A stretch of 64,000 nt of DNA from positions 62,001 through 126,000 of the forward strand of contig JANHCV010000008.1 of the NCBI GenBank assembly GCA_025594325.1. Reading direction: 5' to 3'. The first letter of the stretch is position 1, and each line of letters begins with the position of its first letter. This document shows positions 14,772-41,073 of this stretch, one piece after another. Origin of the DNA: Blastocladiella emersonii ATCC 22665. Lineage: Eukaryota; Fungi; Blastocladiomycota. The notes below the pieces were generated by a model. The model worked only from the letters and a program-made list of their open reading frames with translations. It ran no database searches and was not told the DNA's origin. The position numbers and the translations under genes were made by a program.

Positions 14772-14959
14772 TGAGATTCTGGAACTACAAGAAAAACGTG
14801 ATATTCCGACGCGTCTCGCGTTGTCTCGCACCTTCCACCGCGGCCGCGTCTCCCGGCCACCGTCCGTGATACCGGTCCAGTCAAGCAGATTTTCTTGGCA
14901 AAACCTGGTGCAATGTCCTTCAGGATACCCAATGAACAGCCCATGAAGCAGAAGCAGCC

Positions 14960-17059: not shown

Positions 17060-17196
17060 TCGCTGAGATACATTCTTATTCTGCATGGACAGAGAGTGTA
17101 TGAGAGCGAGGAGCGGGGTCGACGAGGCGACCAAGTCGTCGCCGCGACCGTCCCCGACCCCGCTCTCTTTAGTACTCAACAGGCCATGTAACTCGC

Positions 17197-21705: not shown

Positions 21706-22896
21706 TCACGACGTCGGCGGCTTCCGCAACTGCGCGACCCGCGCGACCCGCGCGCCCTTCCGCGCCTGCCGCCTGCGCCGCCGCTTGAGCACCGTCTCAA
21801 ACGAGATCTCGGCCAGCAGCGCCGTAACCCCCGTCGCCGTGAGCACCGTGCCCGGCTGGATCGGGATCAGTGTCGGCCACAGCAGCACGACCATCATCAC
21901 CAGCAGGTCGACGATGAACACCGCCGTCAGCACCTTGAACGTCGACGTGACGGGCACCTGCAGCCCGGGCGGCCGGTTCTGCGCGACGAACGGCGCCGCC
22001 GCGGCCAGGGAGCGCGTGGAGACTTTGAGCGCCGCGGTTGACGTCGACGCGGCGGCGAGCGAATGCGTCGAGGCGGCGGCAAGGAGGCCGGAAGAACCGC
22101 GCAGCTCGTCCTTGTGCGGAACGGTCAGCGCCGACTGCGACACGGCAGTGGCCGCCGGGTCGGGTGTGAAGCTGCGCGAGCCCAACTCGCCCGTCGACGA
22201 AAGCTTGCCCGCGCTCCCGTGGCCGCCGCTAAGGGCGCCGCCCGAGTTCGAGTCTGCGGCCTCGATGGTCAAGAACGAGTTGGTGAAGGCGATGCGCAGC
22301 GACATAAGCGAGCCGGTCACGATGATGGCAGGGTACGCGCACATGGGCACGACCGCGTAGCTGGGCAGCAGGCTGACGGACGACCACAGCGCCGGATCGT
22401 TTTGCTGGATCAGGTACGCGAGGTTCCAGATCCCGACGGCCTCCTGGAAGATGAACACGGCCGCGCACACAAAGTAGACGACGGCCATGAAGCGTTTCCG
22501 CCAGGTCGGGTTGGCGACCACGATCAGCGAGTTGCGGTGCGCGACGGTGATCGTGAGGCACATGCCGAACGGCACGAACGACATGAGGAACCAGATCTGG
22601 GCCGACGTAAAGTTGGTCGACCCGGACGTCCAGAGATCAAGGTACGTCGTGAAGTTGTTGAGCGCGTCCGTGCCCGCGAGAAACGAGAGCAGCGCGAGAA
22701 GGCGGATACGCGACGTGGATCGGGTCCCGCCCCACGGCGCATAGACGCGGCCTGCGAGCGAGGGCACCGAGCACAGGCACATGACGACGAACGCCAGTCC
22801 GGTGATGGCCGTGAAGGTGCCGCAGACGATGGTCGAGAGCGCGATGTTGTGCGCCACCTCGAACCATATCGAGCACGAACCGTGTGAGTGATCCAT
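21706..22896 (-). CDS. 7TM GPCR-like membrane protein, group B (subgroup B1)
   Basis: Intronless, seven hydrophobic segments. HRNSLIVV after TM3, SLRIAF after TM5, TSTFKVLT, AEISFE followed by a basic tail. Confidence 0.82.
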   Translation of the reverse strand: MDHSHGSCSIWFEVAHNIALSTIVCGTFTAITGLAFVVMCLCSVPSLAGRVYAPWGGTRSTSRIRLLALLSFLAGTDALNNFTTYLDLWTSGSTNFTSAQIWFLMSFVPFGMCLTITVAHRNSLIVVANPTWRKRFMAVVYFVCAAVFIFQEAVGIWNLAYLIQQNDPALWSSVSLLPSYAVVPMCAYPAIIVTGSLMSLRIAFTNSFLTIEAADSNSGGALSGGHGSAGKLSSTGELGSRSFTPDPAATAVSQSALTVPHKDELRGSSGLLAAASTHSLAAASTSTAALKVSTRSLAAAAPFVAQNRPPGLQVPVTSTFKVLTAVFIVDLLVMMVVLLWPTLIPIQPGTVLTATGVTALLAEISFETVLKRRRRRQARKGARVARVAQLRKPPTS

Positions 22897-23207
22897 TTTA
22901 TGAGCTGCATCAACTTGGGTGCGAGCATGGAGTGTCTAGCATGCGAGCGTTCATGCACTGCGAGGACACTTGACGAGTGTCGACCCGCGCGCATCGAATG
23001 TCTCCCGCGTGATACGCGAAAACTTGCGTTTTGTTCCTGAACAACGCGTGACCGCGCGCATCGTTCAGCTCCACGTGACGCATCGCAATAGCTATTTCGA
23101 TAGGTTCGAAGGTCAGGTTCAGTTGCTTTTTAGTAGCTTGAAGCGCAGCAGGAGTTAAATAATCAGGGCTAGTATAATTCAGTACTGGCGGTCTAGTTCG
23201 GCCACGC

Positions 23208-24416
23208 TCATGACGGCGACTTCCGATCCTGCGCAACCCGCGCCCCGCTGCGGCCCTTGCGCGCCTGCCGCTTGCGCCGGCTCTTGAGCATCGACTCGAA
23301 CGAGATCTCTGCCAGCAGCGCCGTGACGCCCGTCGCCGTGAGCACCGTGCCGGGCTGGATCGGGATCAGCGTCGGCCACAGCAGGACGAGCAGCATGAGG
23401 ATCCAGTCGAGAATGAAGACCACCGTGAGCACCTTGAACGTCGACGTGACGGGGACCTGGAGCCCGACGGACCGCTTGGGTGGCGGCGGTAGCGCTGCGA
23501 CCGAGCCCTTGAGCGGCGACGTGGACGCGACCACGACCGTCAGCGCCTTGAGCGAGTGGGCCGACGTGTTGGCCATGGCCGATGCCGAGACGGTGGCCTC
23601 CGACAACTCTTCCTTGTGCGCGAGTAGGGGCGCGGGCGATGCGGGCGTTGGCGACGCCGGGTCGTGCGTGATGCTGCGCGAGCCCGCCTCGTTGGACGAC
23701 AGCTTGCCGTGGTGGCTCGCGGTGCCCTGGACGCTGCTACCGGCGCCGGCCGCGCTCGACGACTCGGTTGTCGCCTCGATGGTCAGGAATGAGTTGGTGA
23801 AGGCGATGCGCAGTGACATGAGCGAGCCCGTGACGATGATGACCGGGTACGCGCACATCGGGACCACGGCATAGCCGGGCAGCAGGCTGACCGACGACCA
23901 CAGGTCCGGGTCGTCCTTCTGGATGAGGTATACGAGGTTCGAGATCCCGACGACTTCTTGGAAAATGAACACGGCCGCGCAGACGAGGTAGACGACGGCC
24001 ATGAACCGTTTCCGCCACGTGGCGTTCGACACGACGATGAGCGAGTTGCGGTGCGCGACCGTCAGGGTCAGGCACATGCCGAACGGCACGAACGAGATCA
24101 TGAACCAGACCTGCGCGGACGTGAAGCTCGTCGACCCGGACGTCCACAGGTCCATGTACGTCGTGAAGTTATTCACGGCGTCGGCGCCGGCAAGAAACGA
24201 GAGCAGGGTGAGGAGCCGGATGCGCGGCGTCGATCGGGCGGTGCCCCACGGCGCGTAGACGTAGCCCGCGAGGAACGGGATCGACCGCAGCAGCAAGATG
24301 ACGAACGTCGGCACGGTTATCGCCGTGAAGATGCCGCACACGATGGTCGAGAACTCGATGCTGTCCGATACGGCGAACCATATCGAACCCGACCCGTGCT
24401 TTTCGGGATTCATCAT
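23208..24416 (-). CDS. 7TM GPCR-like membrane protein, group B (B1)
   Basis: Close tandem paralog of 21706 with the same motifs. Confidence 0.82.
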   Translation of the reverse strand: MMNPEKHGSGSIWFAVSDSIEFSTIVCGIFTAITVPTFVILLLRSIPFLAGYVYAPWGTARSTPRIRLLTLLSFLAGADAVNNFTTYMDLWTSGSTSFTSAQVWFMISFVPFGMCLTLTVAHRNSLIVVSNATWRKRFMAVVYLVCAAVFIFQEVVGISNLVYLIQKDDPDLWSSVSLLPGYAVVPMCAYPVIIVTGSLMSLRIAFTNSFLTIEATTESSSAAGAGSSVQGTASHHGKLSSNEAGSRSITHDPASPTPASPAPLLAHKEELSEATVSASAMANTSAHSLKALTVVVASTSPLKGSVAALPPPPKRSVGLQVPVTSTFKVLTVVFILDWILMLLVLLWPTLIPIQPGTVLTATGVTALLAEISFESMLKSRRKRQARKGRSGARVAQDRKSPS

Positions 24417-24775
24417 GTTGCATCAACTCTAACAGTGTGGCAATGCAAAGCAGAGCGGGGCGAGTGCGGGCCGCTGACGGAGGTGGACTCCTCGCCGGAT
24501 CGGACGTCTCCCGCCCGATACGCGAATAGCGCGTTTGCGACCTTTTCCGACGCCGAAAACAGAAAGATTTTCCGTCGGCGAGCCGAAAACGCGTGGCGAA
24601 ACGCGTCGCTTTGCTCCACGTGACCCGCACGGGATGTATCCGAATGGTCGAGATGGCCGAAGAATGGATACAGATTTTATTTTTGGCTTCGTAATTCACG
24701 CAATTAATGGTTGAAATGTGATTAGAAGATACTTACACGTCGTCGGGCCCTATCGTGCCTCATGGCCACCCGCCC

Positions 24776-26060
24776 TCAACTCGATCCGCAAGGTAGCCTC
24801 CACTGCCGGAGACTCATCGAGTCCATGTTCTCCTTGCGCGCCTGCCGTATGCGGCGCCGCTTGAGCATCGACTCGAACGAGATCTCGGCCAGCAGCGCCG
24901 TGAGCATCGTGCCCGGCTGGATCGGGATCACGGTCGGCCACAGGAGCATAAACAACATCAAGATCCAGTCGAGAATGAAGACCACGGTCAGCACCTTGAA
25001 CGTCGAGGTGACGGGAACTTGCAGCCCGAACGAGCGCTTGGGCGGCGCGGACAACGACGAGGGGGCGTGGACACGCGGCTGGACGTCGAGCCCTTGAGCG
25101 GCAGGCTCGACGCCGACAGCTGCGCGTTGAGCGACGACGTCGAGTGGGGTAGGGCGAGCGAAGTGGCCGACAGCGGCGCGGCGAGCGACGAGGCCGAGGT
25201 GTTGGCCTCGTCCTTGGCCGGGACCAGAAGGCCGGTCGAGATGGTCGACGACGGGTCGTTGATGACGCTGCGCGAGCTCGAAGGACTGGAGGTGAGCTTG
25301 CTTGACGGGCTGGAGATGAGCTTACCGTGATGAAAGCTCGGGGTGCGCGCGAGACTAGTCGCACAGCCGCCGCCCGCGCTGCTGGCCGCGCTCGACGACG
25401 ACTAGTCGGTAGTCGTGATGGTGATGACCGAGTCGTTGAAGGCGATCCGCAGCGACATGTGCGAGCCGGTGACGATGATGATGGGGTAGGCGCACATGGG
25501 CACGACCGCGTAGCCTGGCAGTAGACTGACCGAAGACCAAAGTTGCGGGTCGTCCTTTTCGATCAGGTACGCGAGGTTCCAGATCCCGATGGCCTCCTGG
25601 AAGATGAACACGGCCGCGCACACAAAGTAGACGGCAATCATGAAGCGCGTGCGCCACGTCGGGTTGGTTACGATAATCAGCGAGTTGCGGTGCGCGACCG
25701 TGAGCGTCAGGCACATGCCAAGCGGGACGAACGAGACCAGGAACCAGACTTGGGTCGAGGTGAAACTCGTGGACCCAGACATCCATAGGTCGAGGTAGGT
25801 CGTGAACTGTTGACGGCATCGGCGCCCGCGAGGAACGAGAGGAGCGTCAGTAGCCGAAGCCGCGGCATCGGCTTGAACTTGGCCCACGGCGCGTAGATGC
25901 GGCCGGCGACCGCATGGAATGTGCGGAGGAGCGTGACTGCAAACGTGGGGACCGTGATCGCGGCAAAGATTCCGCAGATCACGGTCGAGAATCCAATGTT
26001 CTCGGACACGGCGAACCAGATTGAGCCCGAGCCGTGCGAGCTGTGCTCTGAATGATCCAT
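24776..26060 (-). pseudogene. 7TM group B (B1) pseudogene
   Basis: 1-nt frameshift near 25810 (DAVN|FTTY), TAG at 25402..25404, frameshift near 25070, and a 15-nt deletion between two GCCGTGA repeats in TM7. Confidence 0.85.
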
Positions 26061-26523
26061 TTTTGTCCACTGTTTACGTTTGATCTGGGGACACGCTATT
26101 CAGGGGTCGGAGGACGGGTTACGGTGGGCGGGCGAGCAGGGGGCGGCACGGAGGGGTCTGGTGCCATGTCAACCCCGCCCCCGGTAGCCCACGCGCGACC
26201 TGGTAAATCGCGATCAAGGGTCTCCCAATCTGCCCGGGATGAGTGCGGCCGGGCCTGGTTTGACACGATGTGACGGCGGTCGGTTGATCCGGTCTCCCAC
26301 GGCCTGCAAGCCTTGCGCGAACTGGACTTGACGCGATTTCTCCCACTCGTGCGGTGCGATGGGATCATTAAGTGAACTCAACCGGCAGCGCCGATGCGCG
26401 GCGATAGAGAGCGCACAGCCGAAGCTGATCGCGCGTTGTTCATAACACGTGCAGTCCCGCGGGAAGATGAAACAAGCACATTCTACATTTTGGGAACAAA
26501 AATGACCGCCTTCCGCTCATCTC

Positions 26524-27984
26524 TCACCCCGTAAGGTCCACTGTAACCGGCACGTTCATCGAGAACGCGACCGACACCTTGTACTCGCTCTGCGCGTGGG
26601 CCGTCCGCCTCGCTCCCTCGCGCCGCGCCTGCTCGAGCTTGAGGACCCACTCGAACGACGCCTCGGTAAGCACGGCGATGGCCGAGAAGAAGGTCTCGAC
26701 GGGCGACGCGTGGATCGGCGGCGGAAAGACCATGGCTACGACGTACAGGATCCACTCGGCGAGGAGAAACAGGGTGAGAGCCTTGAACGAAAAGGTCAAG
26801 GAGACCTCGAGCCCCTGCGCCTCCTTCTTGCGGGTCGTCGTCGACTTGGACGCCGTCAACGAAAAGAGCGAGCCGTTGCTAGGCGTCGTCTGCGACCGCC
26901 ACGGAGTCCACGAGAAGCCCGAGTGCTGGCCGTGAGAGTGTGAGTGCGAGGTGACCTGCGACTGAACCGGAGATATCGAAGGCGCCACGCTCGAGTGCTG
27001 AGGCGACGAACCACGGACCGGTGGCGGCTGAAGTGGCGGGGAGTGCGACTGACCCGGTCCGTTGGACGACGGATGTACGAGGCCGCCAGGCACGATGGCC
27101 GTCACGCCCGCGATGGCTGCCGTTAGTCCGGCCGTTGCAGCCGCGTGTTGCGGTGACACGGCGACGATACGACCGGCGATCATAGACCCGCTCCCGTTGA
27201 GGCTCGAGTTTGACTGTCCCGCGAGGTGCCGTGACAGCGCCTTGGCGAGCGGACGCGGTGCGTAGCGCAAGATCCGCGGCGGTGGCGGCTCCTCGACGAT
27301 CGCGCTGCTGATATCGGCAACCGAGCCGTGAAGAACGAGGCGCGGCGACTTGAATGCGAGTCGTAGCGAGAGTAGCGACCCGCCGAGCGTGATCAAGGGA
27401 AGCAGCGACATGGGGATCAAGACCCAGTTGGGTACAACTTGATTGAACTCGACCCACGTCCGCGCGTCGTTGATGACGGCGAGCTCGATGACGGTCATGG
27501 CACCCGTGATCCACTGCAGCAGGAGCACCGCAAGCGAGAGCAACAGCACGCCTCGACGAAGCAGCTCACGCCATTTGCGGTTCGCGACGAGGATCATGGA
27601 GTACCGCCGGCCTGCTGCGATCGCGATCACGGCGACGGTCGGCACGTTGACGATCAGGTAGATGATGCGGTACGCCAGGTAGTTGACGGGAACACCGCTC
27701 CACATCTGAAGCAGCCACACCAGGTTGTTGGTTCCATCGGCGACCACCATGGCAGAAAGCGCAAAAAGCAAGCGGAGGCGAAGGCCCGTTCTTCGGTTGC
27801 CCCACTCTGGCACGATCCTAGCCATGAGGCGCGGGAACGTCCGTGGGAACAAGCCCACGACGCCGACCATTCCAAGCGTGATGGATACGGCGCAGACGGC
27901 AAGGCTGGCGACGATCACATCGTCGGTGAGGTACACGCCGACCGAGGGTGACGAGCGCTCGTCGGGCTCTTGCGGGTGCGACAT
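26524..27984 (-). CDS. 7TM GPCR-like membrane protein, group B (B2, long third loop)
   Basis: RRYSMILV, VPNWVLIP, LSLRLAF, LTFSFKALT, TEASFEWVL. Confidence 0.8.
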   Translation of the reverse strand: MSHPQEPDERSSPSVGVYLTDDVIVASLAVCAVSITLGMVGVVGLFPRTFPRLMARIVPEWGNRRTGLRLRLLFALSAMVVADGTNNLVWLLQMWSGVPVNYLAYRIIYLIVNVPTVAVIAIAAGRRYSMILVANRKWRELLRRGVLLLSLAVLLLQWITGAMTVIELAVINDARTWVEFNQVVPNWVLIPMSLLPLITLGGSLLSLRLAFKSPRLVLHGSVADISSAIVEEPPPPRILRYAPRPLAKALSRHLAGQSNSSLNGSGSMIAGRIVAVSPQHAAATAGLTAAIAGVTAIVPGGLVHPSSNGPGQSHSPPLQPPPVRGSSPQHSSVAPSISPVQSQVTSHSHSHGQHSGFSWTPWRSQTTPSNGSLFSLTASKSTTTRKKEAQGLEVSLTFSFKALTLFLLAEWILYVVAMVFPPPIHASPVETFFSAIAVLTEASFEWVLKLEQARREGARRTAHAQSEYKVSVAFSMNVPVTVDLTG

Positions 27985-28162
27985 GGCCAGATGGCATTTA
28001 TGGGCCTGGCTGAGCGAGTTTCATAGAGTGCATGGAGTGTAGCATCGATTGCTGTGCTTGATCTCCGGTTCCAGAGCAGCAAATCGATGCCGAAGAGGGC
28101 ACCGAACCGGCCACGCCAGCGAGTGGGAGACACGTTCTATCGCGGGAGACATATGAAGAATC

Positions 28163-29241
28163 TTACATGGATGACGGCACAATCGACATCCCCGCAACGT
28201 GGAAGCTCTGTTTTCGCCCCGCGGCCCTCCGCTAGATCTCCTCGCGCTCGTGGTTTTGCCTGAGCAGCCAATCAAAGGAGGCCTCGGTGACCGCCATGAG
28301 CGAGGCAATGAAGCTTGAGACGGAACTCGCGCGGACCGGCAGCGGACTCGGGACGAGCACCAGGATCGCGAGCCACTCGAAGATCATGATCGCCGTCAGC
28401 GACTTGAACGAGCGGGTCAAGACGATCTCGAGCCTTCCGCGCCGTGGTCGCGTACTTTTACTCGGAGAGGCCACGGACATAAGCGAGCTGGGCTTGAGCA
28501 ACGAGGCTGATCCAGCATGGGCCAGCGGAAGCGTGCTGGTCGACGTATCGCGCACCGTGGCCTGGATCTCGAGGGTGCCGCGCGACGGCCCGCTCGCCAG
28601 CGTGACCTTGCCGTCGGTCGAGGCGGTCCCCGCCGACGAAATGTTGCTGACGGACCGCATGAGCTGCGGATCGCGGAATGCGACGCGGAGCGATCAGAAG
28701 GCTCCGGCAAGCACCGTAGTCGGGAGAACGGAAAGTGGCAGTAGCGCCCAGCTACCGGATCGTCGAGGTGCGCAAGACGCACGATTTTGACGGCGCCAAC
28801 GATGAGTGTGAAGAGCGCGATGCAGAGTGCGAGAGCCGAGATAAAGCGGACCAGCCGGACACGCATGGCGCGGTCCTCGACGATGATCGGCGCGTGCCGT
28901 CGAGTGATGATCAGCGCGGCGAGCGGCAAGAGCGGGATGTAGAGAATCACGAAAAGTGAATGCGTCACGATAAACTTGGTGTCGAACCCGAGCCAAACGG
29001 TCACGGTGAAGTAGACCGCGTTGGCGGCATCGAGGATCAGGATGACCCCGAAGGCGAGCAGCAGAACGGGACGGGTCCGTTACCGCGAGCCCGGCGCCCG
29101 TTCTCGCCCATACCAGCGCGGCAAGGACACAAAGTACTTGAGAGCGAGGTAGCAGGAGGTCACGAGCGATATCAGAAGCGAGATGCTCGACACGGCGAGC
29201 GTGGAGATGGCTTGTAAATCCGTCAGCAAGGGCGGGCTCAT
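28163..29241 (-). pseudogene. 7TM group B (B3) pseudogene
   Basis: Starts MSPPLLTDLQAISTL. TAA at 29080..29082, deletion/frameshift near 28755, TGG>TGA at 28694, TAG at 28232. The ancestral tail FHVAGMSIVPSSM* is still readable to 28163. Confidence 0.85.
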
Positions 29242-29357
29242 TGCGAGTAGTGGTTGGCGGTTCGATGCATGGAATTGTCTGTCATTTACTGCTCATGCGG
29301 GTGAGTTGGATCCGGGACCCCGGAGCTTGCCCGCTCGACCGCGATCGCGCAGGCAGC

Positions 29358-29401
29358 GGACGCGTCGAACAATCACGTGATGTCTCGCATCCCTGTCTCG
29401 C
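29358..29401 (-). promoter_or_regulatory. Conserved upstream module of B3 7TM genes (also at 30698..30730, 32000..32046, 33319..33364, 34655..34696)
   Basis: Plus-strand consensus GGACGCGTCRRACAATCACGTGATGTCTCGCA-N4-YGTCTCGCA, 75-170 nt upstream of each ATG, in otherwise diverged spacers. Confidence 0.6.
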
Positions 29402-29451
29402 GCCTCAAACGACGGGCCCGCTGGCGAGTGACTAGCAGGATAGTACTCTAT

Positions 29452-30585
29452 TTACAAGAAGGAAGGCACCGCGGACATGCCCGCGACGTGCGACACCTGT
29501 TTCTGCCGCTCGACCCTCCGTTTAGACTCCTCGCGCTCGTGGTTTTGCCGCAGGAGCCAGTCGAACGACGCTTCGGTGACGAGCATGAGGGACGCCATGA
29601 ACGTCGACGTTGAGCTCGCGCGCACGGGGAGCGGGCTCGCGACGAGGATCAGGAGCGCAAACCACTCGAGGATCAGGATGATGGTGAGCGTCCGGAACGA
29701 GCGCGTCAGGACGAGTTGCAGCCCACCGCGTTTGGACGCCGGTGAGGTCGGAGTAGAAGGCGACGATGTGACCGAAAGCAGCGGGTTGGGCCACAGGAAG
29801 GTGACGGACGTGGACACGGCGCTCGGCGGCGGGCTCATGATCGAGTCGCGCACCGAAGTCTGGATCTCCAGGTTCGCGCGGGATTGGTTGCTGGTGCTTG
29901 CGCTCGCGCTCGCGGCCGTCTTGGCGTCGGCCGACAACGATTCGGAAGACGACGTCGTGAACCCGCTCCCGGGCCGCTCGAGCTGCGGCTCGGTGAAGGC
30001 GACTTTGAGCGACCAGAATGCGCCGCCGATGACGGCCGTCAAGAGGACCGAGAGCGGCGCGAGGGACCAGTACGGGAACAGCGGGGTGTCGATCCACAGC
30101 GCGGGGCTGTTGAGCTGGTCGAGCTTGACGAGGTTCATGGCGCCGACGAGGAAGATGAAGATCGAGATGGTGACCGAAAAGAACGACATGAAGCGGATGA
30201 ACCGCGCTCGCCGGGCGCGGTCCTCGACGATGATGAGCGCGTGGCGCCGCGTGATGATGTTCGCGACAAACGGGAGCAGCAGTACATAAATAATGGCGTA
30301 GAGGAGCCGCGTCGTGAAGAAGTGCGTCCCGAGCCCCATCCAAGCGGTGTAGTTGAAGTAGATGGCGTTGGCCGAGTCGACCACGAGCAGCATCCCGTAG
30401 ACGAGCAGGAGCACGGGCCGCGTGTGTTTTCGCCGTGCGGAGCGGATCTTCCCGCCGAGCCATTTCGGCAGCGTGACAAAGTACTTGAGCCCAAGGTAGC
30501 ACGTCGTGACGAACGAAATGACGAGCGACGCCCCCGAGACGGCCAGCGTCGAGATGGCTTGCAGGTCCGTCAACAGCGGTGCCAT
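29452..30585 (-). CDS. 7TM GPCR-like membrane protein, group B (B3)
   Basis: MAPL.TD.QAISTL start, RPVLLL, TRRHALIIVEDR, AFWSLKVAF, LTRSFRTLT, TEASFDWLL, tail PSFL*. Confidence 0.85.
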   Translation of the reverse strand: MAPLLTDLQAISTLAVSGASLVISFVTTCYLGLKYFVTLPKWLGGKIRSARRKHTRPVLLLVYGMLLVVDSANAIYFNYTAWMGLGTHFFTTRLLYAIIYVLLLPFVANIITRRHALIIVEDRARRARFIRFMSFFSVTISIFIFLVGAMNLVKLDQLNSPALWIDTPLFPYWSLAPLSVLLTAVIGGAFWSLKVAFTEPQLERPGSGFTTSSSESLSADAKTAASASASTSNQSRANLEIQTSVRDSIMSPPPSAVSTSVTFLWPNPLLSVTSSPSTPTSPASKRGGLQLVLTRSFRTLTIILILEWFALLILVASPLPVRASSTSTFMASLMLVTEASFDWLLRQNHEREESKRRVERQKQVSHVAGMSAVPSFL

Positions 30586-30798
30586 GGTAGATGCATGTAG
30601 TGGTGGGCGTAGATCATTTGGGTCCGGTGAGCTGGGTAGCCGAGCGAAGCGTCCGAATGCTCGCGATCACATCCGCGGACCGCGCGTAAAACACGCGCAC
30701 GTGATCGTGTCTCGCACGCGTGTCTCGCATGTGGCGCTCGCGACAACACAGCTCCTCCCTGACAATGGACTTCCAAAAACAACGAGGCAGAGGTACAT

Positions 30799-31926: not shown

Positions 31927-32095
31927 GGTTGATGCATAGAGTAATCGTGGGGTTCAGGTCTATTCTCAAACTCAAACGGGTGAATGAGATGGGGCAAGTG
32001 GACGCGTCGGACAAATCATGTGATGTCTCGCACTCGTGTCGCGCATGAACGGACCTATCCCGAGAAAGTCAGTCAAAGTTACGGATAACGCTAAA

Positions 32096-33217
32096 TTACA
32101 AAAACGATGGCACAACCGACATCCCCGCCACATGAAAGCTCTCATGGGCATGCCTGACCTTGCGCTTAGCCTGCTCGCGCTTGCGGTTTCGCTCGAGTAT
32201 CAACTCAAACGAGGCCTCGGTGACAAGCAAGAGCGACCCGACCAACGCCGTCGTGGCGCTCACCCGAACGGGGATCGGGCTGAGGATGAGGACCGTGAGG
32301 GAAACGCAGATCAAGCTCATGATGATGGTCAAGGTCTTGAAGGACCGAATCAGACCGACCTCGAGATCGCTGCGCCTGGGCGCCGTGGCCGTGGTGAACG
32401 TGGGCGTGAGCGAGTGCTGAGAGCTGCCGCGCAGGGCCTGGTGACCCAGCGGTGCGGGCGGGGCGGGCGGGGCGGGCGGCGCGTGCGTGGCCGAGAAGCT
32501 TGCCTTGCGCACGGTGGTGAGAATCTCCTGGAGCGGACCGCCCGCAGTTGCCGACTTGGTCTCGTCCGACGTGCTCGCCTTTGACGAAGACGCGCGGCTG
32601 CGGGTCGACAGCTGCTCGGGATTACGAAACGCGACGCGGAGCGCCCAGAACGCGCTGCTGAGGATAAACGTCGGGAAGATGGCGAGCGGCGCGAGCGTCC
32701 ATACGGGGAAGATGGCGCCGTTGACCCAGACAGCGGGTTCGTTGATCTGGGCCTGCCGGTACAAGCTCGTGGCGCCGACCGAAAGCATGAAGAGCGCGTC
32801 CAGAATGGCGAGAACGTGGATAGCGCGGACCATGCGCGCACGCTTGGCGCGGTCTTCGACGATAATCAACGCGTAGCGCCGAGTGACGACCACGGCCGCG
32901 AGTGGTAGCAGAATGACGTTGATCGCGACGAAGAGAAAGCGCGATGCAAAGAACGCGGTGCCGAGCTCGCGCCATGTGAACCAGGTGAAGTAGCAGGTGT
33001 TGACTGCATCGACAGAGAACAGAACACCGCCGACGACGAGGAGCACCGGGCGCGCTTGGATCCGTGATGCGGCAGGTTGATGCCCGCCGAGCCATGCCGG
33101 CAGGGTGACAAAATATCGAAAAACCAGGCTCAAGATCGTCGCGATCGAGATGAAGAGCGCGGTCGAAGCCACGGCAAGTGTTGATATTGCCTGGACATCA
33201 GTCATCAGAGGCGCCAT
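32096..33217 (-). CDS. 7TM GPCR-like membrane protein, group B (B3)
   Basis: Tandem paralog with the same motifs, tail PSFL*. Confidence 0.85.
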   Translation of the reverse strand: MAPLMTDVQAISTLAVASTALFISIATILSLVFRYFVTLPAWLGGHQPAASRIQARPVLLVVGGVLFSVDAVNTCYFTWFTWRELGTAFFASRFLFVAINVILLPLAAVVVTRRYALIIVEDRAKRARMVRAIHVLAILDALFMLSVGATSLYRQAQINEPAVWVNGAIFPVWTLAPLAIFPTFILSSAFWALRVAFRNPEQLSTRSRASSSKASTSDETKSATAGGPLQEILTTVRKASFSATHAPPAPPAPPAPLGHQALRGSSQHSLTPTFTTATAPRRSDLEVGLIRSFKTLTIIMSLICVSLTVLILSPIPVRVSATTALVGSLLLVTEASFELILERNRKREQAKRKVRHAHESFHVAGMSVVPSFL

Positions 33218-33405
33218 GATTCAGGATGCATCAAGTGGTCAAGTGTAGTATTCATTGCTGGCTACACGGTGGGCGAAACAAGCGGGGCATGGTTGCGATC
33301 CTGCGGCCAAGCAGGTCTGGACGCGTCAAACAATCACGTGATGTCTCCCACTCGCGTCTCTCACGCACGAGGTTTGGCCGGAGGTCGGACAGAAATGACG
33401 CTTTG

Positions 33406-34527
33406 CTATAAAAACGACGGCATGACCGACATCCCCGTGACGTGGAAGCTCAGTTTGGCCCTTATTGCTTTACGTTTGGCCTCTTCGCGCTCGCGATTCT
33501 GGCGGAGCAGCCATTCGAACGAAGTCTCGGTAACGAGCATGAGCGACCCGATGCACGTCGTGATGGCGTTCGTGCGAACAGGGAGCGGGCTGATGATGAG
33601 CGCCACCATCGCAATCCACAAGACGATCATGGTGACAGTCAGGGTTTGAAAGGACCGGGTGAGGACGATCTCGAGCCCGCCGCGTTTGGGTGCCGCAGCA
33701 GCGGGCGGCGAGTTGGCAACCGAGTGAAGTGGGAGCAAGACGGCCGAGGTCGAGGAGGCGCCTGCGGTCGGTGATGTTGGCGACGCGGCCGCGCTGCTGC
33801 TCGCATCGTGCGCCGAGGCGAGGACGTCCAAGTTGACGCGTGACGGGCCAGATCCCGGCGCCGGCTTGCCGTCGGCCGAACCGATCGCGGGCAGCGACGC
33901 GCTGGCTGTCACGCGCACGAGGTTGGGTTCGCGGAACGCGATGCGGAGTGCCCAAAACGCGCCGCCGAGGACTGCGGTCGGGAGGATTGAGAGCGGGACG
34001 AGCGCCCACAGCGGGAAGATGAGCGAGTTGACCCAGACTGCCGGCTGGTCGACCTGCGCCTGGCGGTACAAGTTGGCGGTTCCGACGCCAAAACTGAACG
34101 TCCCGATCCCGCATGCGAGGAGGTGGATGACGCGGACCATCCGCGCGCGTTTGCGGCGATCCTCGACGATGATCATGGCGTGCCGTCGGGTGATGATCAC
34201 GGCCGCGAGCGGGAGCAGGAAGACGTAGATGGCCGTGAAAAGAGACCGCGACACGAGGAACGCGGTGCCCAGCTCGCGCCAGGTGAACCACGTGAAGTAC
34301 AGGCTGTTGGCCGAGTCAACTGCGATCAGAATCCCGAAGACAAGGAGGAGAACTGGACGCGCCTGCCGTCGTGCAGCAGGCTGACTGCGGCGGCCAGTGA
34401 ACCACGCGGGTATGGTCACAAAGTATCGGGCGGCCAAGTAGATGGACGCGGCGGCCGAGACAACCAGCGAGGTCGCAGCCACAGCAAGGGTTGACACGGC
34501 TTGTAGGTTGGACATCAACGGCGCCAT
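33406..34527 (-). CDS. 7TM GPCR-like membrane protein, group B (B3)
   Basis: Tandem paralog with the same motifs, tail PSFL*. Confidence 0.85.
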   Translation of the reverse strand: MAPLMSNLQAVSTLAVAATSLVVSAAASIYLAARYFVTIPAWFTGRRSQPAARRQARPVLLLVFGILIAVDSANSLYFTWFTWRELGTAFLVSRSLFTAIYVFLLPLAAVIITRRHAMIIVEDRRKRARMVRVIHLLACGIGTFSFGVGTANLYRQAQVDQPAVWVNSLIFPLWALVPLSILPTAVLGGAFWALRIAFREPNLVRVTASASLPAIGSADGKPAPGSGPSRVNLDVLASAHDASSSAAASPTSPTAGASSTSAVLLPLHSVANSPPAAAAPKRGGLEIVLTRSFQTLTVTMIVLWIAMVALIISPLPVRTNAITTCIGSLMLVTETSFEWLLRQNREREEAKRKAIRAKLSFHVTGMSVMPSFL

Positions 34528-34792
34528 GGTGGGACCTCAACGAGTATCGGGTTGATGCATCGAGTTAGCATGTGAACAAGGTCGAAAAGCTGCGAACAGG
34601 GACACTCACGCTATCAGCAGCCAGGCCCGTCTCGCGATGCAATCGCTGCCTCACGGACACGTCGAACAAACACGTTGTGTCTCGCACTCTTGTCACCCGG
34701 CGGGCTCACGTCAACGCTCAGTTTCGTGCGATTTTCACTTCAACTCGTCCCGCTCTCGCTCTTCTGCACAACCGCTCTACCCGGTCAATCGC

Positions 34793-35866
34793 TTACAAAA
34801 ACGTCGGCACCGTCCCCACCCCGACCCCGTCCAACGTCGTACTCCCATGCCCCGCCCTCGCCCGCCCCCGCTCCCTTTCCCGCCGCTGTGCGCGGTGCAG
34901 GATCCACTCGAACGAGGCCTCGGTGACGAGCGCGACGCTGGCCATGAGCGAGGTGCGCGCGTTGTCGCGGACGGGCAGGGTCGCGGCCTTGAGGGCGAAC
35001 ACGGCGATCCACTCGATGACGAGGGCGGCGGTCAGGATCCGGAAGGTGCGCGTCAAAGCGACGCGGATCCCGATGGCGCGGCTGTCCCTGCGCGGCGGCG
35101 GCGCGGGCGGTGTGGTGGGACATTCGGTGGGCGAGAGCGGCGCGAAGACAAGCGTCGCAGAGCCCTGCGGGACGGGAGCGGCGCACGGTGTCTCGGCAAC
35201 GGCCGTCGCCGGTTTCGACGCCGCGCCGACCGCAGCCGGCTCGCGCAACCCGACACGCAACGTCCACAGCGCGCCGCCGAGCGTGACGGCCATGAGCGCA
35301 AACTCGCACGACGAGATCCAGTTCGGGACGAGCCGCGTGCTCAACCACCTCGCCGGGTCACCGATCGCCGCGAGCTCAACGACACTCGCGAGCCCGCGCG
35401 CAATGAACACGGCCGTGAACGCTCCGCTGAGCGCGATCATCGCTCTCACAAGCCGCTGCTGGTTCCCCGGGTCCTCGATGACGATGAGCGCGTGCCGCCG
35501 CGTGATGATGAGGGCGAGCAGCGGGAGGAGCGGGCCCGCGGTGAACAGGTACACGGTGCGCGCGAGGACAAAGTTCGGGGGCGGGGAAGACCGCCACGCG
35601 GACCAGATGTACGCGAACCCGTTCAGGATGTCGGCGCACGTCAGCAGGCCGTACGCGACGAGCAGGCCCGGGCGGCGGCCGCGGGACTCGTGGTGCGTCG
35701 AGTTGCGACGACTACGTGGTCGGCGGCAGCAGTAGCACCGCGGGTGGAGCCGGCGATACCGGCGCAGCAGGTACAGCGTGGTCGGGACGGCGAGGGCGAC
35801 CGCGACGGCGTAGGTCCACAGCGTCGCTATGGCTTCGTGATCGGGCAGCAGAGGGTCTGGTTCCAC
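34793..35866 (-). CDS. 7TM GPCR-like membrane protein, group B (B3, divergent); GTG at the position of the paralogs' ATG
   Basis: Open 357-codon frame with TRRHALIVIED, LWTLRVGL, LTRTFRILT, TEASFEWIL, tail PTFL*. It begins caccGTG where paralogs have caccATG or taccATG. Confidence 0.7.
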   Translation of the reverse strand: MEPDPLLPDHEAIATLWTYAVAVALAVPTTLYLLRRYRRLHPRCYCCRRPRSRRNSTHHESRGRRPGLLVAYGLLTCADILNGFAYIWSAWRSSPPPNFVLARTVYLFTAGPLLPLLALIITRRHALIVIEDPGNQQRLVRAMIALSGAFTAVFIARGLASVVELAAIGDPARWLSTRLVPNWISSCEFALMAVTLGGALWTLRVGLREPAAVGAASKPATAVAETPCAAPVPQGSATLVFAPLSPTECPTTPPAPPPRRDSRAIGIRVALTRTFRILTAALVIEWIAVFALKAATLPVRDNARTSLMASVALVTEASFEWILHRAQRRERERGRARAGHGSTTLDGVGVGTVPTFL

Positions 35867-36216
35867 GGTGTGTGTGCGTCTATGTGATCGAGGGCGGCTT
35901 CGACTACCGCTCGGGAAGCGAGGACCGCCGCGACAGACGGCGCCGGCTGAGCGAGATCGGGAGCCACCACGCTCGCACTCACATCCGAGCCGAGCAAGCG
36001 CTATCGCGGTGGCTCTCGGCAGGTCGTGCCATCGTCACCATGGGGGACGGCAGCGGCCGGGGTGGTGGTGCGGGCGGGAGGCAGCCGGCCATCCTTGACC
36101 GCGCCGACGTCGCCGCTCTCTCCCTCCGACCCCCACCCGCCTCGGCGATCCATGTAACGCGACTCGGTGCAACCTCGCGCCAGTCCATCTTGCATCAAGT
36201 ATTATCCATCCATACC

Positions 36217-36874
36217 ATGCCCTCGCACGGCGACGAGAGTAACGGGCGGCCGACGAAGCGGGCGCGGTTCGCGGCGGACCCCGTGTCGGCGGCGGACCCG
36301 CTGGGCGACGACGACGAGCTGCAGGGCGACGACGTGGGCGAGTCGTCCAGCGGGCCCATCTCGGCGACGGTCGGGTCGATGCAGGTGCCCATGACGATGC
36401 AGCTCATCTACGAGGCCGACGAGCGGACAGTCGGGTGCGTCCTCCCCTCCTCTCTCCCCCCCGTCCCCTCTGACCCCGTACCCGCACCAGCGAGTTCGTT
36501 GAGAAACACTGCACCCCCGACCAGCGCGAGCGGTTCTACGCGTTCCGGCGGATCAAGTTCAACGGGAGCCACCTGCGGCGCCTCGCAATTGCGGCCACGG
36601 GCGCCAATACCATTACGAAAGGCGTCCCGCTGGTGCTGTCGGCCATCACGCGCACGTACCTGTCCGAGATCCTCGACCTGGCGCGCGCGGTCATGCGCGA
36701 GATGGGCGACTCGCCGACGGGCGCCCTCGGGCCGCATCATTTGCGCGAGGGGTACCGGAGGTATCGCGCGCGAGGTACGTTGTGCGTTGGGTGAGGGTGT
36801 GGGGCTGAGCGCTGACGACGCGGGGTGTAGGACGCGGGTTCCCGCCGCACAACTACCGGAAACGCATCTTCTGA
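36217..36874 (+). CDS. TAF11: TFIID subunit TAF11 (histone fold); exons 36217..36434, 36491..36774, 36831..36874; 181 aa. Not recovered intact in the ORF track.
   Basis: Spliced translation ...EFVEKHCTPDQRERFYAFRRIKFNGSHLRRLAIAATGANTITKGVPLVLSAITRTYLSEILDLARAVMREMGDSPTGALGPHHLREGYRRY... follows the TAF11 pattern (Q..R...RR..F; L.P.H.RE..RR). The introns keep the frame. Confidence 0.82.
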
Positions 36875-36921
36875 TCCTTTCATGAAGTACACTCGTTTTC
36901 CATTCACGCCAAATGATGTGT

Positions 36922-38058
36922 CTATTTTGTCCTTGCGGGATATCCATGACTCGCCGCTGCAGCCTTCCACTGCCCCGCCGCCGTCCCCGCGACCTGCTGC
37001 GCGGCATGCACCCCCGCGCTCCCGACCTTGACCGCCGTGCGGCTTGGTATCTCGATCGCGACCCCGGCCCCCTTCGCCGCCGCGTTCGCCGCGGCCTCGC
37101 GCGCGCGCCGCATGCGGTGCTTCCACCGCAGACGGCGGAACAGGTGGTCGAACGAGAGCTCCATGACGCAGCTCGCGGGCGACGCGACCATGCCGACGGC
37201 GGTGCGCAGCAGCGCCGGGATGCCGGGCACCATCTCGGCGATCGCGTAGGCGGTCCACAGCGAGATGAAGGTCAGCGTCAGGTACCGGAACGTCGACGTG
37301 AGCGGCGCGCGGATCCCGCCGTGGTGCGTGATCAAGCCGACGGGGGGCGGGTTGGTGAGGGTCGCGCCGGACGACGCTGCAGAGCTGCCGAACTGCGTCG
37401 TGGGGTCGGACCCGTTCCCCGACGACGACCCGAGCGGGTCCGGCAGATCGAGGTGCTCGAACGCAACGGCCAAACTCCTTGCCGACGCGTACAGGACCGC
37501 AGCAGGCAATACACCCGACGCGGCGACGCACCACGCCGGGTACAGCGGCGTCCGCGTCGCGATCTCGGGCTTCTGGGCGACCTCGGCGAACGTCGCGGCC
37601 GCGCCGATCCACTGCATCACGCCCACGACGACACCCAGCGCGGTCGCGAGCCGCACCATCGACTTCTGCACGCTCGGCTGCGCGACGACAATGGTCGCAC
37701 ACCGCTGCAGCGCGATGACCGTGACGACGGCGGGCAGCGGGCAGTTGACGGCAACCGCGACCGCGCGCGTCGCAATGGCCGCGCGCGGCGGGACGTGGCC
37801 GAGGAGCAGCTCGCATAGCGCGATGACCAGCGCGTTGCCCGACGCGAGCAGCGCGAGGACGCCGAGAGACAGGAGGAGGACCAGGCGGAACGAGACGCGG
37901 ATGCGGTGCGGCCGTGGTCTTGGGTGAGGGTGTTGAGGGGCGCAGGGTCGAGGGGAGGGGAGCAGCCGCGCAATCATGTACGCCAGGCACGCGACGGCGA
38001 TGCACACGCCGACGGCGTCGAGCAGCGCGGCCGCGGCGGCGGTGGCGGTCGATACCAT
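36922..38058 (-). CDS. 7TM GPCR-like membrane protein, group B (B4, short third loop)
   Basis: QRCATIVV, YPAWC, SLAVAFE, LTSTFRYLT, ELSFDHLFRR. Confidence 0.78.
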   Translation of the reverse strand: MVSTATAAAAALLDAVGVCIAVACLAYMIARLLPSPRPCAPQHPHPRPRPHRIRVSFRLVLLLSLGVLALLASGNALVIALCELLLGHVPPRAAIATRAVAVAVNCPLPAVVTVIALQRCATIVVAQPSVQKSMVRLATALGVVVGVMQWIGAAATFAEVAQKPEIATRTPLYPAWCVAASGVLPAAVLYASARSLAVAFEHLDLPDPLGSSSGNGSDPTTQFGSSAASSGATLTNPPPVGLITHHGGIRAPLTSTFRYLTLTFISLWTAYAIAEMVPGIPALLRTAVGMVASPASCVMELSFDHLFRRLRWKHRMRRAREAAANAAAKGAGVAIEIPSRTAVKVGSAGVHAAQQVAGTAAGQWKAAAASHGYPARTK

Positions 38059-38394
38059 GGTTGTGATTGTTGAGGAGGAGGAGGGGAGAGAGCGGGGGCG
38101 AGGCCGTCCTGCAAGTTCATCCTGCAGCGGCGACCATACGCCACCCGACGCGGGAGGAACAAGGCGCCGCTCGGCGGCCCCAGGCGTGGACCCACGCTGG
38201 CAGCCGCAGCGGTATCAAGATGAGCAAAAGCGGGTCCTGGTGCGGCCGATCCGTTGAAAAGGCGGAAGCGAGCGGGCGGGCAACGGCGGCGACGGAGCAG
38301 AGTGTGGCACCGGAAGAACTCGAGGCGGTGGCGGAGAGGCCCCATGTGGCGCAGCGCCTCGCCGACGTGTGGACATCACCGACGCGTCGCTCAT

Positions 38395-39648
38395 TCATTC
38401 TACGGGGCGTGTATTGGTGGGAGCCGGCGCAATCTCACCGCTTGGTCGCGGTGCGGTACATTCATCTGCCGGACCGACACCACCCATCCCGACCATCCCC
38501 ACCGCGGCTGCCGCGGGTGGTGCAAACTCGGCCATCGTCATCGCAACACTCTCGGGATGCCCGTCACCCGCGCGCATCTTCCTTCGGATCGCCTGCGTGC
38601 GTCGGTGGTCACGCCGAACGACGTAGTCGAAGCACAGCTCGGCGACCGCCGTCAGCGCCGCCAGGAACACGATCAGGCCCTGGCGCAGGATCAGCGGGAC
38701 CGGCAGCAGGTACGCGCCGAACCAGCACGTCCACAGCGTGATGAAGATGAGCGTCGTTGAGCGGTAGCTCAGCGTCAGGGATTCTTGGAGCACGGCGACG
38801 CGGCGGCGCGGGAGCGCGGGCAGTGGTGGTGGGGGTGGTGCAGGGTCGGTAGGGGTGGTGGGGAGTGGACTGAGCAAGCCCGACCGCCCGACGAGAGAGC
38901 GCGACAGGTTGAGCGTGAGCGTCGACGAGCTGAGCGCCGACACCAATCGCGACGCCGACGACGTCTGCCCAAGCGGGCGCGGCGCAGGCACCGGCACGGG
39001 GTCCTCGAAGGCAACCGCGAGCGACTTGACCGTGGCCGTCGCGAGCGTGACGGGCAGCAGAATCGTCAAATACATGGCCCACCGCGGGTACGCCGGCCCC
39101 TCCGCCAACACCGCGGGGTCCATTCGCCCCGCCATCTCGACCAGCGTGAACACCCCGCTCCCCGCCTGCACCGCGAGCACGACGAGCGCGAGCGACGTGC
39201 ACGCGCCGACGAACCGCCGCTGCCACGCCTTGTCCGTCGCGGCGACCGCCGCGTACCGCCGCGACGCGTTGATGGTCACGATCGACGGGATCGGGAAGAT
39301 GAACACCAGGACGAGCGCGCGGCACGGGATCAGCGCGGTAGTGGGGCCGAAGACGAGAAGGTACGCCATGGCGGCGTAGTTGGCGGAACCGAACAGCGTC
39401 AGCAGACAGTGCAGCCACACGAGGTTCGCGCGCACCGCGTCGAGCCCGGGCACCCGCTTTCGTCGTGTCGTAGCATCCGCGGGCTGCTTCGGCCCGCTCC
39501 ACCGCCGCAGCAACGGGTTCGGGATCCCCGGAAACGACGAGCCCAGGAGCCACGTCATGCACAGGACTGAGAGCACCGCGCCCGCGCCGGATAGCCCCAT
39601 GGCCGCGGCCGCGATCGCGAGCGGGACCAGCGGCGGATGCATGGACAT
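38395..39648 (-). CDS. 7TM GPCR-like membrane protein, group B (B4)
   Basis: SRRYAAVA, YPRWA, SLAVAFE, LTLSYRSTT, ELCFDYVVRR. Confidence 0.8.
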   Translation of the reverse strand: MSMHPPLVPLAIAAAAMGLSGAGAVLSVLCMTWLLGSSFPGIPNPLLRRWSGPKQPADATTRRKRVPGLDAVRANLVWLHCLLTLFGSANYAAMAYLLVFGPTTALIPCRALVLVFIFPIPSIVTINASRRYAAVAATDKAWQRRFVGACTSLALVVLAVQAGSGVFTLVEMAGRMDPAVLAEGPAYPRWAMYLTILLPVTLATATVKSLAVAFEDPVPVPAPRPLGQTSSASRLVSALSSSTLTLNLSRSLVGRSGLLSPLPTTPTDPAPPPPPLPALPRRRVAVLQESLTLSYRSTTLIFITLWTCWFGAYLLPVPLILRQGLIVFLAALTAVAELCFDYVVRRDHRRTQAIRRKMRAGDGHPESVAMTMAEFAPPAAAAVGMVGMGGVGPADECTAPRPSGEIAPAPTNTRPVE

Positions 39649-39807
39649 GGTTGCATTATGGATGTTGCATGGAGTGGGTTACATTGAATGGAGGTGGATG
39701 AGGGGTCGGGGGAGAGGAGAGGAGGAGAGCACGGCTGTCTCGCGGAACGCACGTGGGCGCGAGACACTTTCGCGTCGCGTCCGGAACGGGTCAAAACCGG
39801 GGCCCGA

Positions 39808-41073
39808 TCATGGCGCCGGGTTTTCATTCGAGGACAGAATACACGCCGGCACCACTGTCGCACTCATCCCGGTCACAACCACCGCGGCGCCCTCAACAGC
39901 GGCCTCGCCCTTTTCTGGCGCCGCCGGCACCCCAACCACCGCGAACTCCGCCATCGTCATCGCCACACTCTCGGGATGCCCTTCCCCCGCACGCACCTTC
40001 CGCCGCAACTTCTGCGTGCGTCGATGATCGCGCCGGACGACGTAGTCGAAACACAGCTCGGTGACCGCGGCCACGGACGCGAGGAACGCGATGATCCCCT
40101 GGCGCAGGATAAGCGGGACCGGGTACGCACCGAACCAGCACGACCACATGTACACGAACACGGCCGTCGTCGACTTGTAGCTCAGGGTGAGGGACTCTTG
40201 TAGCGGCGCGATGCGGCGGCGTGGGAGCGTGGGCAGTGGGGGCGGCGGAGGGTGAGGGGTGGTGGGCGACGGCAGCGACGTGGCCGAGCTGGGCGACGAT
40301 GGCAACGGGACTTGCCCGCCCGGCCGCGCGAGCATTGAGCGTGACAGGGACATGGACAGCGTCGACGCGCTGAACGCGATCGGCAGGCGGACCGACGACG
40401 AGCTAGCGCGCGGCAACCCTTCTGTATCCTCGAACGCGACTGCGAGCGCCTTGACCGTGGTCCCCGCGACCGTGACCGGCAGGAGGAACGTGAGGTACAG
40501 CGCCCACCGCGGGTACGCCGGGCCCTCGGCCAGCACGTGCGGGGTTCATTTTCCCCGCCATGACGACGACCGTGAACAGCGCCGCGCCCTCCTGGACCGC
40601 GAGCACCAGCAGCGCGACGCCTGTGCACACGGCGACGACGCGGTGCTGCCAGTCGCGGCTCGCGGCGGCCACCGCGACGTACCGCCTTGCCGCGTTCACG
40701 GTCGCGATCGACGGGATCGGGGAGATGAACATCAGGACCAAAGCGCGGCGCGGTGATGGGGCCGTACACGAGAAGATAAGTCATGGCCATGTAGTTGGCG
40801 GACCCGAACAGCGCGAGGACGCAGTGCACCCACACGAGCTGCGCGCGGACGGGGTCGAGGCCCGGCAGGCGTTGCCGTCGGCGGGTTGTTGTGGGGACGG
40901 CGACGGCGGGGACGGACGCGCGCTTGCTCCACCGCCGCAGCGGGTTCGGGATCCCCGGGAACGTGGACCCGCGCATCCACGACATGCAGAGCACCGAGGA
41001 CCACCGCGCCGAGCGCGGCTACGGCCATGGACGCCGCCGCGGTGGGTAGCGGGACGAGCGGGAGCGTGGCCAT
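39808..41073 (-). pseudogene. 7TM group B (B4) pseudogene, paralog of 38395
   Basis: Three frameshifts relative to the neighbour: +1 near 41000, a deletion of about 11 nt near 40755, and +1 near 40540. Confidence 0.85.

Follow-up and report, generated by a model that had tools for sequence, protein, structure and literature searches.

Zoosporic fungi steer by chemical cues, and Blastocladiella emersonii is a model for sensory signalling via the rhodopsin-guanylyl cyclase BeGC1; to our knowledge, no chemoreceptor has been identified in the Blastocladiomycota. Several described groups of seven-transmembrane (7TM) receptors are relevant to the locus reported here. The chemoreceptor genes of animals (OR, V1R and TAS2R, and the nematode sr genes) and the PTH11 expansions of the Pezizomycotina form dense tandem arrays of intronless or intron-poor genes with pseudogenes and lineage-specific expansion, and in their products the side facing the ligand varies whereas the side facing the transducer is conserved. 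The class D receptor Ste2 of fungi is encoded by a single-copy gene; it has a short N-terminus on the outside, is without the DRY and NPxxY motifs, and has a short third intracellular loop (ICL3) and a long regulatory C-terminal tail. The Git3/Gpr1 genes are likewise single-copy, and in their products the blocks formed by transmembrane segments (TM) 1-5 and 6-7 are split by a long, low-complexity ICL3. Here we describe a cluster of 7TM receptor-like genes in a 64-kb stretch of the genome of B. emersonii ATCC 22665 (hereafter the window), covering the gene copies and their lesions, topology, fold, taxonomic range, conservation gradient, purifying selection and upstream motifs.

In genomic style the cluster is of the same kind as the animal chemoreceptor arrays and the PTH11 expansions, and V1R/TAS2R and nematode Srbc clusters are among the fold neighbours of its products; however, no sequence relationship to either group was detected, the taxonomic range is different, and the CFEM domain often present in PTH11 proteins is absent from this family. 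The proteins share the short outside N-terminus of Ste2 and the absence of DRY and NPxxY, but here it is ICL3 that forms the long disordered element and the genes are in tandem. They also share the split architecture of Git3/Gpr1, but none of the members scanned is matched by the current Pfam models for Git3 and Git3_C. We consider it moderately probable that they constitute a lineage-specific receptor family with a G-protein-coupled receptor (GPCR) fold, locally expanded and signalling via a shared cytoplasmic partner.

The cluster of receptor-like genes

Family proteins were searched against the window by tblastn, and a hidden Markov model (HMM) built from 51 family members was run on its six-frame translation; the window carries locus tags around H9P43_006613 to 006626. 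The tblastn search yields exactly 13 family intervals between 21709 and 41283, every one on the minus strand. According to the list of open reading frames (ORFs) and their translations, this block contains ten open frames of 357-486 codons (21706-39648, minus strand), and the remaining three copies can be followed against an intact sister only with frame changes. A preliminary description of this DNA as an intronless, tandemly expanded 7TM family of 13 paralogs, ten open and three pseudogenes, is thus supported by the tblastn intervals, the ORF list and the frame analysis, as is its statement that the TAF11 gene is the sole interruption, the intergenic spacers being 162-453 bp with the exception of a 1055-bp gap in which TAF11 lies. 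The family HMM matches intact block members with E values of 1e-60 to 1e-88, and finds six further intact, intronless members outside the block, at 12-17 kb and 47-56 kb and on both strands. The window therefore holds 19 receptor copies in 64 kb (16 open and three broken), and the B. emersonii cluster comprises at least 19. The 13 genes are the core of this two-strand cluster and not the whole array, and the earlier statement that all lie on the minus strand is correct for the central block but not for the cluster.

Proteins of different subgroups are 22-30% identical, the two of the A pair 70%, and C1-C4 share 46-59% identity with one another. All members of the block are on the minus strand, and it begins with receptor A1 (21706-22896, intact, 396 aa, HMM E 1.5e-83), for which there is an AlphaFold2 model, and receptor A2 (23208-24416, intact, 402 aa), the other member of the A pair, with dN/dS (the ratio of nonsynonymous to synonymous substitution rates) of 0.37 between them. 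These are followed by pseudogene psi-A3 (24753-26070), whose tblastn pieces fall in frames -3, -2 and -1; the reading frame changes at least twice, near 25045-25078 and near 25806-25827. Receptor B (26524-27984) is intact, with 486 aa, a long ICL3 and an HMM E value of 1.4e-88, and pseudogene psi-C0 (28166-29247) lies in two frames with the change at ~28750-28756. The C subgroup includes the intact receptors C1 (29452-30585, 377 aa, an exact match to database protein P0006), C2 (30799-31926, 375 aa), C3 (32096-33217, 373 aa) and C4 (33406-34527, 373 aa), together with C5 (34793-35866), an open frame 357 codons long in which GTG occupies the family start position. TAF11 (36217-36922, plus strand) is not a family member; it has one intron, and its TAFII28 domain is at 36474-36791 (E 1.2e-15). 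To its right are receptors D (36922-38058, intact, 378 aa, HMM E 3.8e-64) and E (38395-39648, intact, 417 aa, annotated H9P43_006625), and then pseudogene psi-E2 (39811-41073), which is spread over three frames and annotated as H9P43_006626. The six outlying members form a deep second clade and all are intact: F1 (12085-13245, plus strand, 386 aa, HMM E 2.7e-13), F2 (13518-14771, plus, 417 aa, E 5.6e-43), F3 (14960-17059, plus, 699 aa, with a very long ICL3 and C-terminal tail and HMM matches in both halves), F4 (47351-48538, minus, 395 aa, E 1.1e-21), F5 (48901-50355, plus, 484 aa, E 8.6e-31, identical to P0077) and F6 (54427-55614, minus, 395 aa, E 1.2e-08). We note that the C1-C5 proteins (29452-35866) share the C-terminal consensus G(M/V)-x-x-(V/M)-P-(S/T)-F-(L/M)-COOH, which could be a sorting or PDZ-type signal.

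The genes also share sequences upstream. The octamer GCGAGACA occurs at 15 sites in the window, where 4.9 +/- 2.3 are expected and none of 100 shuffles reached 15, and 11 of the 15 are just upstream of family genes belonging to both deep clades. Sites listed are at 14822, 29381, 29394, 30708, 30721, 32024, 34678, 39736, 39759, 41197, 48748 and 55710; those upstream of family genes are mostly 100-250 bp away, are often paired, and often lie beside CACGTG and ACGCGT. The enrichment suggests co-regulation, and GCGAGACA, CACGTG and ACGCGT together represent a candidate shared cis-regulatory module, as judged from the sequence. In addition, most receptor ATG codons are preceded, at a distance of 5-40 bp, by a conserved ATGCA(T/A)C(A)ACC element (e.g. 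30590-30610, 31930-31945 and 39650-39680). Because it contains an out-of-frame ATG, an initiator or transcription-start element is more likely than part of a long 5' untranslated region.

Topology, fold and conserved positions

Seven hydrophobic segments emerge from Kyte-Doolittle windows combined with the alignment. Lysine and arginine are scarce in the N-terminus and in the loops between TM2 and TM3, TM4 and TM5, and TM6 and TM7, and abundant in the tail and in the loops between TM1 and TM2, TM3 and TM4, and TM5 and TM6, a positive-inside pattern that places the N-terminus outside and the C-terminus inside. AlphaFold2 supplied with a ten-paralog alignment gave a predicted local distance difference test (pLDDT) score of 69, and a model of receptor C4 made with 51 members reached a pLDDT of 80.1 and a predicted template-modelling score of 0.76, with helices mostly above 90. 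The C4 model has seven helices and a helix 8, with a disordered loop between TM5 and TM6 and with TM7 running into a long basic helix. Hydropathy, charge and the models thus bear out the seven segments, outside N-terminus, long ICL3 and helix 8 that had been proposed, and the structural features by which GPCRs are recognised (seven TM segments, N-terminus out and C-terminus in, a counter-clockwise GPCR-type bundle, and helix 8) are all present.

Comparisons of fold agree with this. Foldseek searches against the Protein Data Bank (PDB) and Swiss-Prot models return essentially only GPCRs, with probabilities of ~1.0 and modest E values (1e-3 to 0.1); the Swiss-Prot matches are headed by aminergic receptors with long ICL3 regions and include a fungal (Orbilia) ascaroside receptor and a Dictyostelium cAMP-receptor-like (Crl) protein (E 2e-3). 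VIA-align, which is independent of Foldseek, ranks Ste2 first (Z 17.8-18.2, 250 residues, all seven helices). Z scores of 15-16 follow for TAS2R14, mGlu5 and TMEM87A as well as numerous class A receptors, and microbial rhodopsins and designed GPCR-like folds reach about 14-14.6. The Ste2 structure (PDB 7ad3) is the closest structural match to the model (Z 18.2, rmsd 3.7 Å over 250 residues), although the identity is ~10% and there is no detectable sequence similarity. Fold searches of the Atlas and the AlphaFold database return generic 7TM neighbours without class resolution. The GPCR-like fold of the preliminary description is therefore upheld, with GPCR-type bundles, aligned over TM1-7, as the top matches of both methods; as far as models can show, a GPCR-type bundle is well supported, and no single GPCR class is picked out by the fold matches.

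Conserved columns were counted over 51 family members. Among the most constant are R115 at the cytoplasmic end of TM3 (51/51), R57 at the start of TM2 (50/51) and P183 in the middle of TM5 (49/51). TM2 carries L67-x-x-x-D71-x-x-N74 near its middle (D or E in 35 of 51, N in 35 of 51), P172-x-W174 precedes TM5 (P 36/51, W 27/51), and L194-R-x-A-F198 is at the end of TM5 (L 43/51, F 28/51). TM6 begins with F293-x-x-L296-T297 (48, 47 and 32 of 51, respectively) and contains W304 (45/51), TM7 ends in E334-x-S336-F337-E338 (50, 28, 49 and 35 of 51), and K/R342 follows it at the cytoplasmic end (47/51). Every shared motif listed in the preliminary description can be found, and these motifs rank with the most conserved columns. 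Class A and cAMP-receptor-like GPCRs agree with the family in fold and topology and offer analogues for several of these positions, including the basic residue at ICL1/TM2, the L-x-x-x-D in mid TM2, the arginine at the end of TM3, the mid-TM5 proline, the TM6 tryptophan and helix 8.

Conservation is not evenly distributed across the membrane. The cytoplasmic halves of the helices average 1.92 bits and the outer halves 1.44 (Mann-Whitney p = 2e-6, 51 members), and seven of the ten most conserved columns are in inner helix halves, with the outer halves and ICL3 variable. ICL3 is the fastest-evolving region, with a dN/dS ratio of ~0.6 compared with 0.31-0.40 elsewhere. A conserved transducer-facing side and a variable ligand-facing side is, by analogy, the pattern that GPCR families show, and the contrast between inner and outer halves is the basis of the receptor mechanism proposed below. 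Close paralog pairs have dN/dS values of 0.36-0.50 at dS 0.55-1.0, indicating that intact copies have long been kept by purifying selection.

Relatives, alternative explanations and gene models

An exhaustive profile search of 1.84 billion 50% cluster representatives identified 89 related proteins with an E value of 1e-3 or below, 64 of them at 1e-10 or below; a word-indexed homology search was swamped by low-complexity ICL3 words and gave four matches with one alignment and one with the other. All 28 of 28 relatives that we looked up come from B. emersonii, B. britannica, Catenaria anguillulae, Allomyces macrogynus, A. javanicus, or JGI/IMG metagenome contigs, and those with named sources are all from Blastocladiomycota and all annotated as hypothetical. 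The genes had previously been called orphans, and this does not hold, given 89 relatives in other blastoclads and metagenomes. B. emersonii also has single members of the family at other loci, and B. britannica has many members. In a phylogenetic tree, the B, C, D and E genes of the window form a clade of B. emersonii sequences only (88 in the approximate likelihood ratio test, SH-aLRT), A1 and A2 are on a separate branch, and F1-F6 constitute the second deep clade, within which F1, F4 and F6 group with 100% support. B. britannica has expansions of its own, and together with the clade restricted to B. emersonii these point to a birth-and-death pattern. The Catenaria anguillulae homologs are a tandem pair (L001 7982-9573 and 10001-11417) with two introns at the same profile positions (~187 and ~302), whereas all of the B. 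emersonii and Allomyces family genes examined are intronless, and a comparison of these gene structures points to either intron loss or retroposition-like origins in the Blastocladiella and Allomyces lineages.

Pfam was scanned with sets of 7, 51, 6 and 10 proteins, with E values up to 10 allowed in three of the four scans. Although more than 60 members, fused public models included, were scanned, no model of a GPCR family or of any other credibly matched one of them. The earlier claim that the proteins belong to no described family is thus sustained at the Pfam level, and the same scans contain no confident match to a known non-receptor family. In particular, the members scanned have no match to 7tm_1 (PF00001), STE2 (PF02116), Git3 (PF11710), Git3_C (PF11970), Dicty_CAR (PF05462) or the PTH11-like Fung_rhodopsin (PF20684), and for the last the only likeness is a TM-score of ~0.5 to one Atlas cluster. 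Profile searches of PDB sequences with 10- and 51-sequence alignments gave nothing significant, the best being CRTH2 at E 0.0086 over a single stretch, and Ste2 is absent from the matches of the 51-sequence profile at E values up to 10. The models and the searches together suggest a GPCR-fold family that has not been described before and is known to date from Blastocladiomycota alone.

Several observations weigh against a receptor role. There is no sequence-level link to any GPCR family, whether in the Pfam scans or the PDB profiles. The class A hallmarks are incomplete, and in the 51-member columns only the invariant TM3 arginine represents the E/DRY and NPxxY motifs; it is flanked by Q/M/L/H/R and C/I/V/Y, without the acidic residue before it or the conserved tyrosine after it, and TM7 carries T-E-x-S-F-E in place of NPxxY, without N-P. 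The conserved disulfide of the extracellular loops and the TM1 asparagine of class A are also absent. Among recent paralogs, dN in the outer and inner helix halves differs modestly (0.38 vs 0.31). Finally, true GPCRs score little better in VIA-align than TMEM87A (Z 15.9), microbial rhodopsins (~14.5) or designed GPCR-like folds (14), and a GPCR-like fold alone is no proof of signalling.

TMEM87A introduces the first alternative, which is that the proteins are GPCR-like bundles but not ligand-activated GPCRs, serving instead in trafficking or lipid handling (as in the GOST, TMEM87, GPR137 or THH1/TOM1 types) or as scaffolds. Its Z score is close to those of GPCRs, no GPCR model in Pfam matches the family, and a language-model feature search of the protein atlas (whole protein and TM1-5) gave sub-threshold neighbours that include DUF7703, THH1/TOM1/TOM3 and GPR137 (all below 0.9) as well as STE2 and STE3. 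However, the Pfam models of TMEM87-, GPR137- and THH1-type families are unmatched too, and there is no GOLD or other luminal domain. Moreover, 7TM proteins with housekeeping roles usually occur in few copies and are conserved across many lineages, whereas this family is restricted to a phylum, has at least 19 copies at one locus, turns over by birth and death, and varies in the outer helix halves. We therefore regard a non-receptor role as unlikely.

A second alternative places the family within a described fungal class, as a strongly diverged branch of either the Ste2-type class D or the Git3/Gpr1 carbon sensors, in which case it would not be new. Ste2 is the best structural match by about 2 Z units, the proteins are built like Git3/Gpr1, with a long ICL3 between TM1-5 and TM6-7, and the Orbilia and Dictyostelium proteins are among the Swiss-Prot fold matches. 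Two Catenaria members were also automatically named in UniRef as 'Git3-domain' and 'GPCR family 1 profile', but current Pfam does not reproduce either name: the STE2, Git3, Git3_C, Dicty_CAR and 7tm_1 models are unmatched at E values up to 10 even in these two proteins (P0012 being the one named for Git3), and the 51-sequence profile does not retrieve Ste2. Descent from one of these classes appears rather improbable.

Two other kinds of 7TM protein were considered and rejected. An insect-type 7TM channel (GR/OR/GRL) is excluded by the outside N-terminus, and no GR or OR is among the fold matches shown; there is a profile match to Gr43a (E 0.016) over a single stretch only. A microbial (type I) rhodopsin is excluded by the lack of a conserved lysine within TM7, where the only basic column is K/R342, and rhodopsins rank below GPCRs in the fold search.

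The public gene models differ from the units described here. GenBank H9P43_006622 (1190 aa) merges C5, C4, C3 and C2, and H9P43_006613 (1316 aa; window 11096-17436) merges F1-F3 and more, with TM helices omitted at every junction. Each receptor unit has its own ATG and stop, a conserved N-terminus and C-terminal motif, and the upstream GCGAGACA/CACGTG/ACGCGT module, so the fused models are almost certainly artefacts. That these units are instead domains of giant multi-7TM proteins, as the models imply, has next to no likelihood and we reject it, although the genome paper does mention GPCRs in 'tandem duplicated forms' (PMC9730499), because of the start, stop and promoter module of each unit, the helices lost at junctions, and the single 7TM units seen in all of the B. 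emersonii and Allomyces singletons examined. The fused models may themselves underlie these 'tandem duplicated forms', and the same paper (Leonard et al. 2022) counts 54 GPCRs. Two further models, H9P43_006618 (psi-A3) and 006626 (psi-E2), span the frame shifts by means of introns. Fused models and intron-bridged pseudogenes can distort both GPCR counts and apparent 'tandem duplicated' architectures.

Two of the three pseudogenes, psi-A3 and psi-C0, were checked against independent contigs from the same sample. For psi-A3 there are contigs from two DNA runs, assembled separately, and for psi-C0 the frame-shift site is covered by contigs from three DNA runs, with zero differences in either case. 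The B. emersonii assembly is of PacBio HiFi reads polished with Illumina data (PMC9730499), and with the lesions recurring in separate contigs an assembly error is unlikely. At position 26498, which is intergenic and just downstream of receptor B, DNA run X9 is one base short relative to the assembly. C5 is a less certain case. It has GTG where its sisters have ATG, there is no in-frame ATG upstream, and use of the first internal methionine would cost TM1-3; it also has a long branch in the tree, and dN/dS relative to C4 is 0.62. It is possibly a fourth copy on the way out, recently disabled.

Genomic surroundings and possible roles

Chitin deacetylase genes (carbohydrate esterase family 4, Polysacc_deac_1) are located on both sides of the block, at 20018-21172 (plus strand), 41311-41931 (minus) and 43137-44348 (minus), and one of them has a chitin-binding domain. 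Near the ends of the window are Harbinger-type DDE_Tnp_4 transposase ORFs in opposite orientations (1605-2657, minus, and 59311-60291, plus), and leucine-rich repeat (LRR) ORFs are present at 9691-10377 and 55966-59177. Each transposase ORF adjoins LRR genes and an F-clade receptor (F1 or F6), an arrangement that looks as if the cluster were framed by an old segmental duplication in inverted orientation. The ORF at 61044-61424 (minus) resembles the tail of H9P43_006731 (P0009), which belongs to the family but lies at another locus: it matches the C-terminal 121 residues of that protein, a non-membrane part, at 92% identity. Either this ORF is a duplicated tail domain or the H9P43_006731 model is also a fusion.

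For the receptor family that we favour, a plausible scheme is as follows. Repeated local duplication and gene loss built the B. emersonii cluster, and each protein would sit in a membrane, its N-terminus on the outer side. Different small ligands may be recognised by the variable outer halves of the helices together with the outer loops, and the conserved cytoplasmic face would act as a common switch and a docking surface for one shared transducer. This face would be composed of the arginine at the start of TM2, the arginine at the end of TM3, the F-x-x-L-T at the start of TM6, and the E-x-S-F-E and basic helix 8 after TM7. The transducer would most likely be a heterotrimeric G protein; such proteins are present in Allomyces (PMC3971589), so a transducer is available. 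The disordered ICL3, rich in serine, threonine and proline, probably serves in regulation, for instance as a target of phosphorylation.

Blastoclad zoospores are chemotactic, but no receptors are known for this behaviour, and Swafford and Oakley note how little is known of its mechanism (bioRxiv 10.1101/165027). That the family members act as receptors, couple to G proteins, differ in their ligands and take part in zoospore chemosensing is our inference, the last of these being in keeping with blastoclad biology. The most specific form of this idea is that it serves as the chemosensory repertoire of blastoclad zoospores and gametes, acting in amino-acid chemotaxis, in the recognition of germination cues and, in Allomyces, possibly in responses to sirenin and parisin, with a GPCR fold and an origin independent of animal chemoreceptors; we advance this tentatively, as an idea more likely wrong than right. 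If true, the animal-like genomic style of tandem arrays, pseudogenes and a variable ligand face would have evolved independently, and the family would add an independent case of chemoreceptor-style genome organisation outside animals. A phylum-restricted, fast-turnover family with a GPCR fold and a conserved transducer face represents a concrete candidate sensor set, and its members are reasonable candidates for the chemical sensors of swimming fungal spores.

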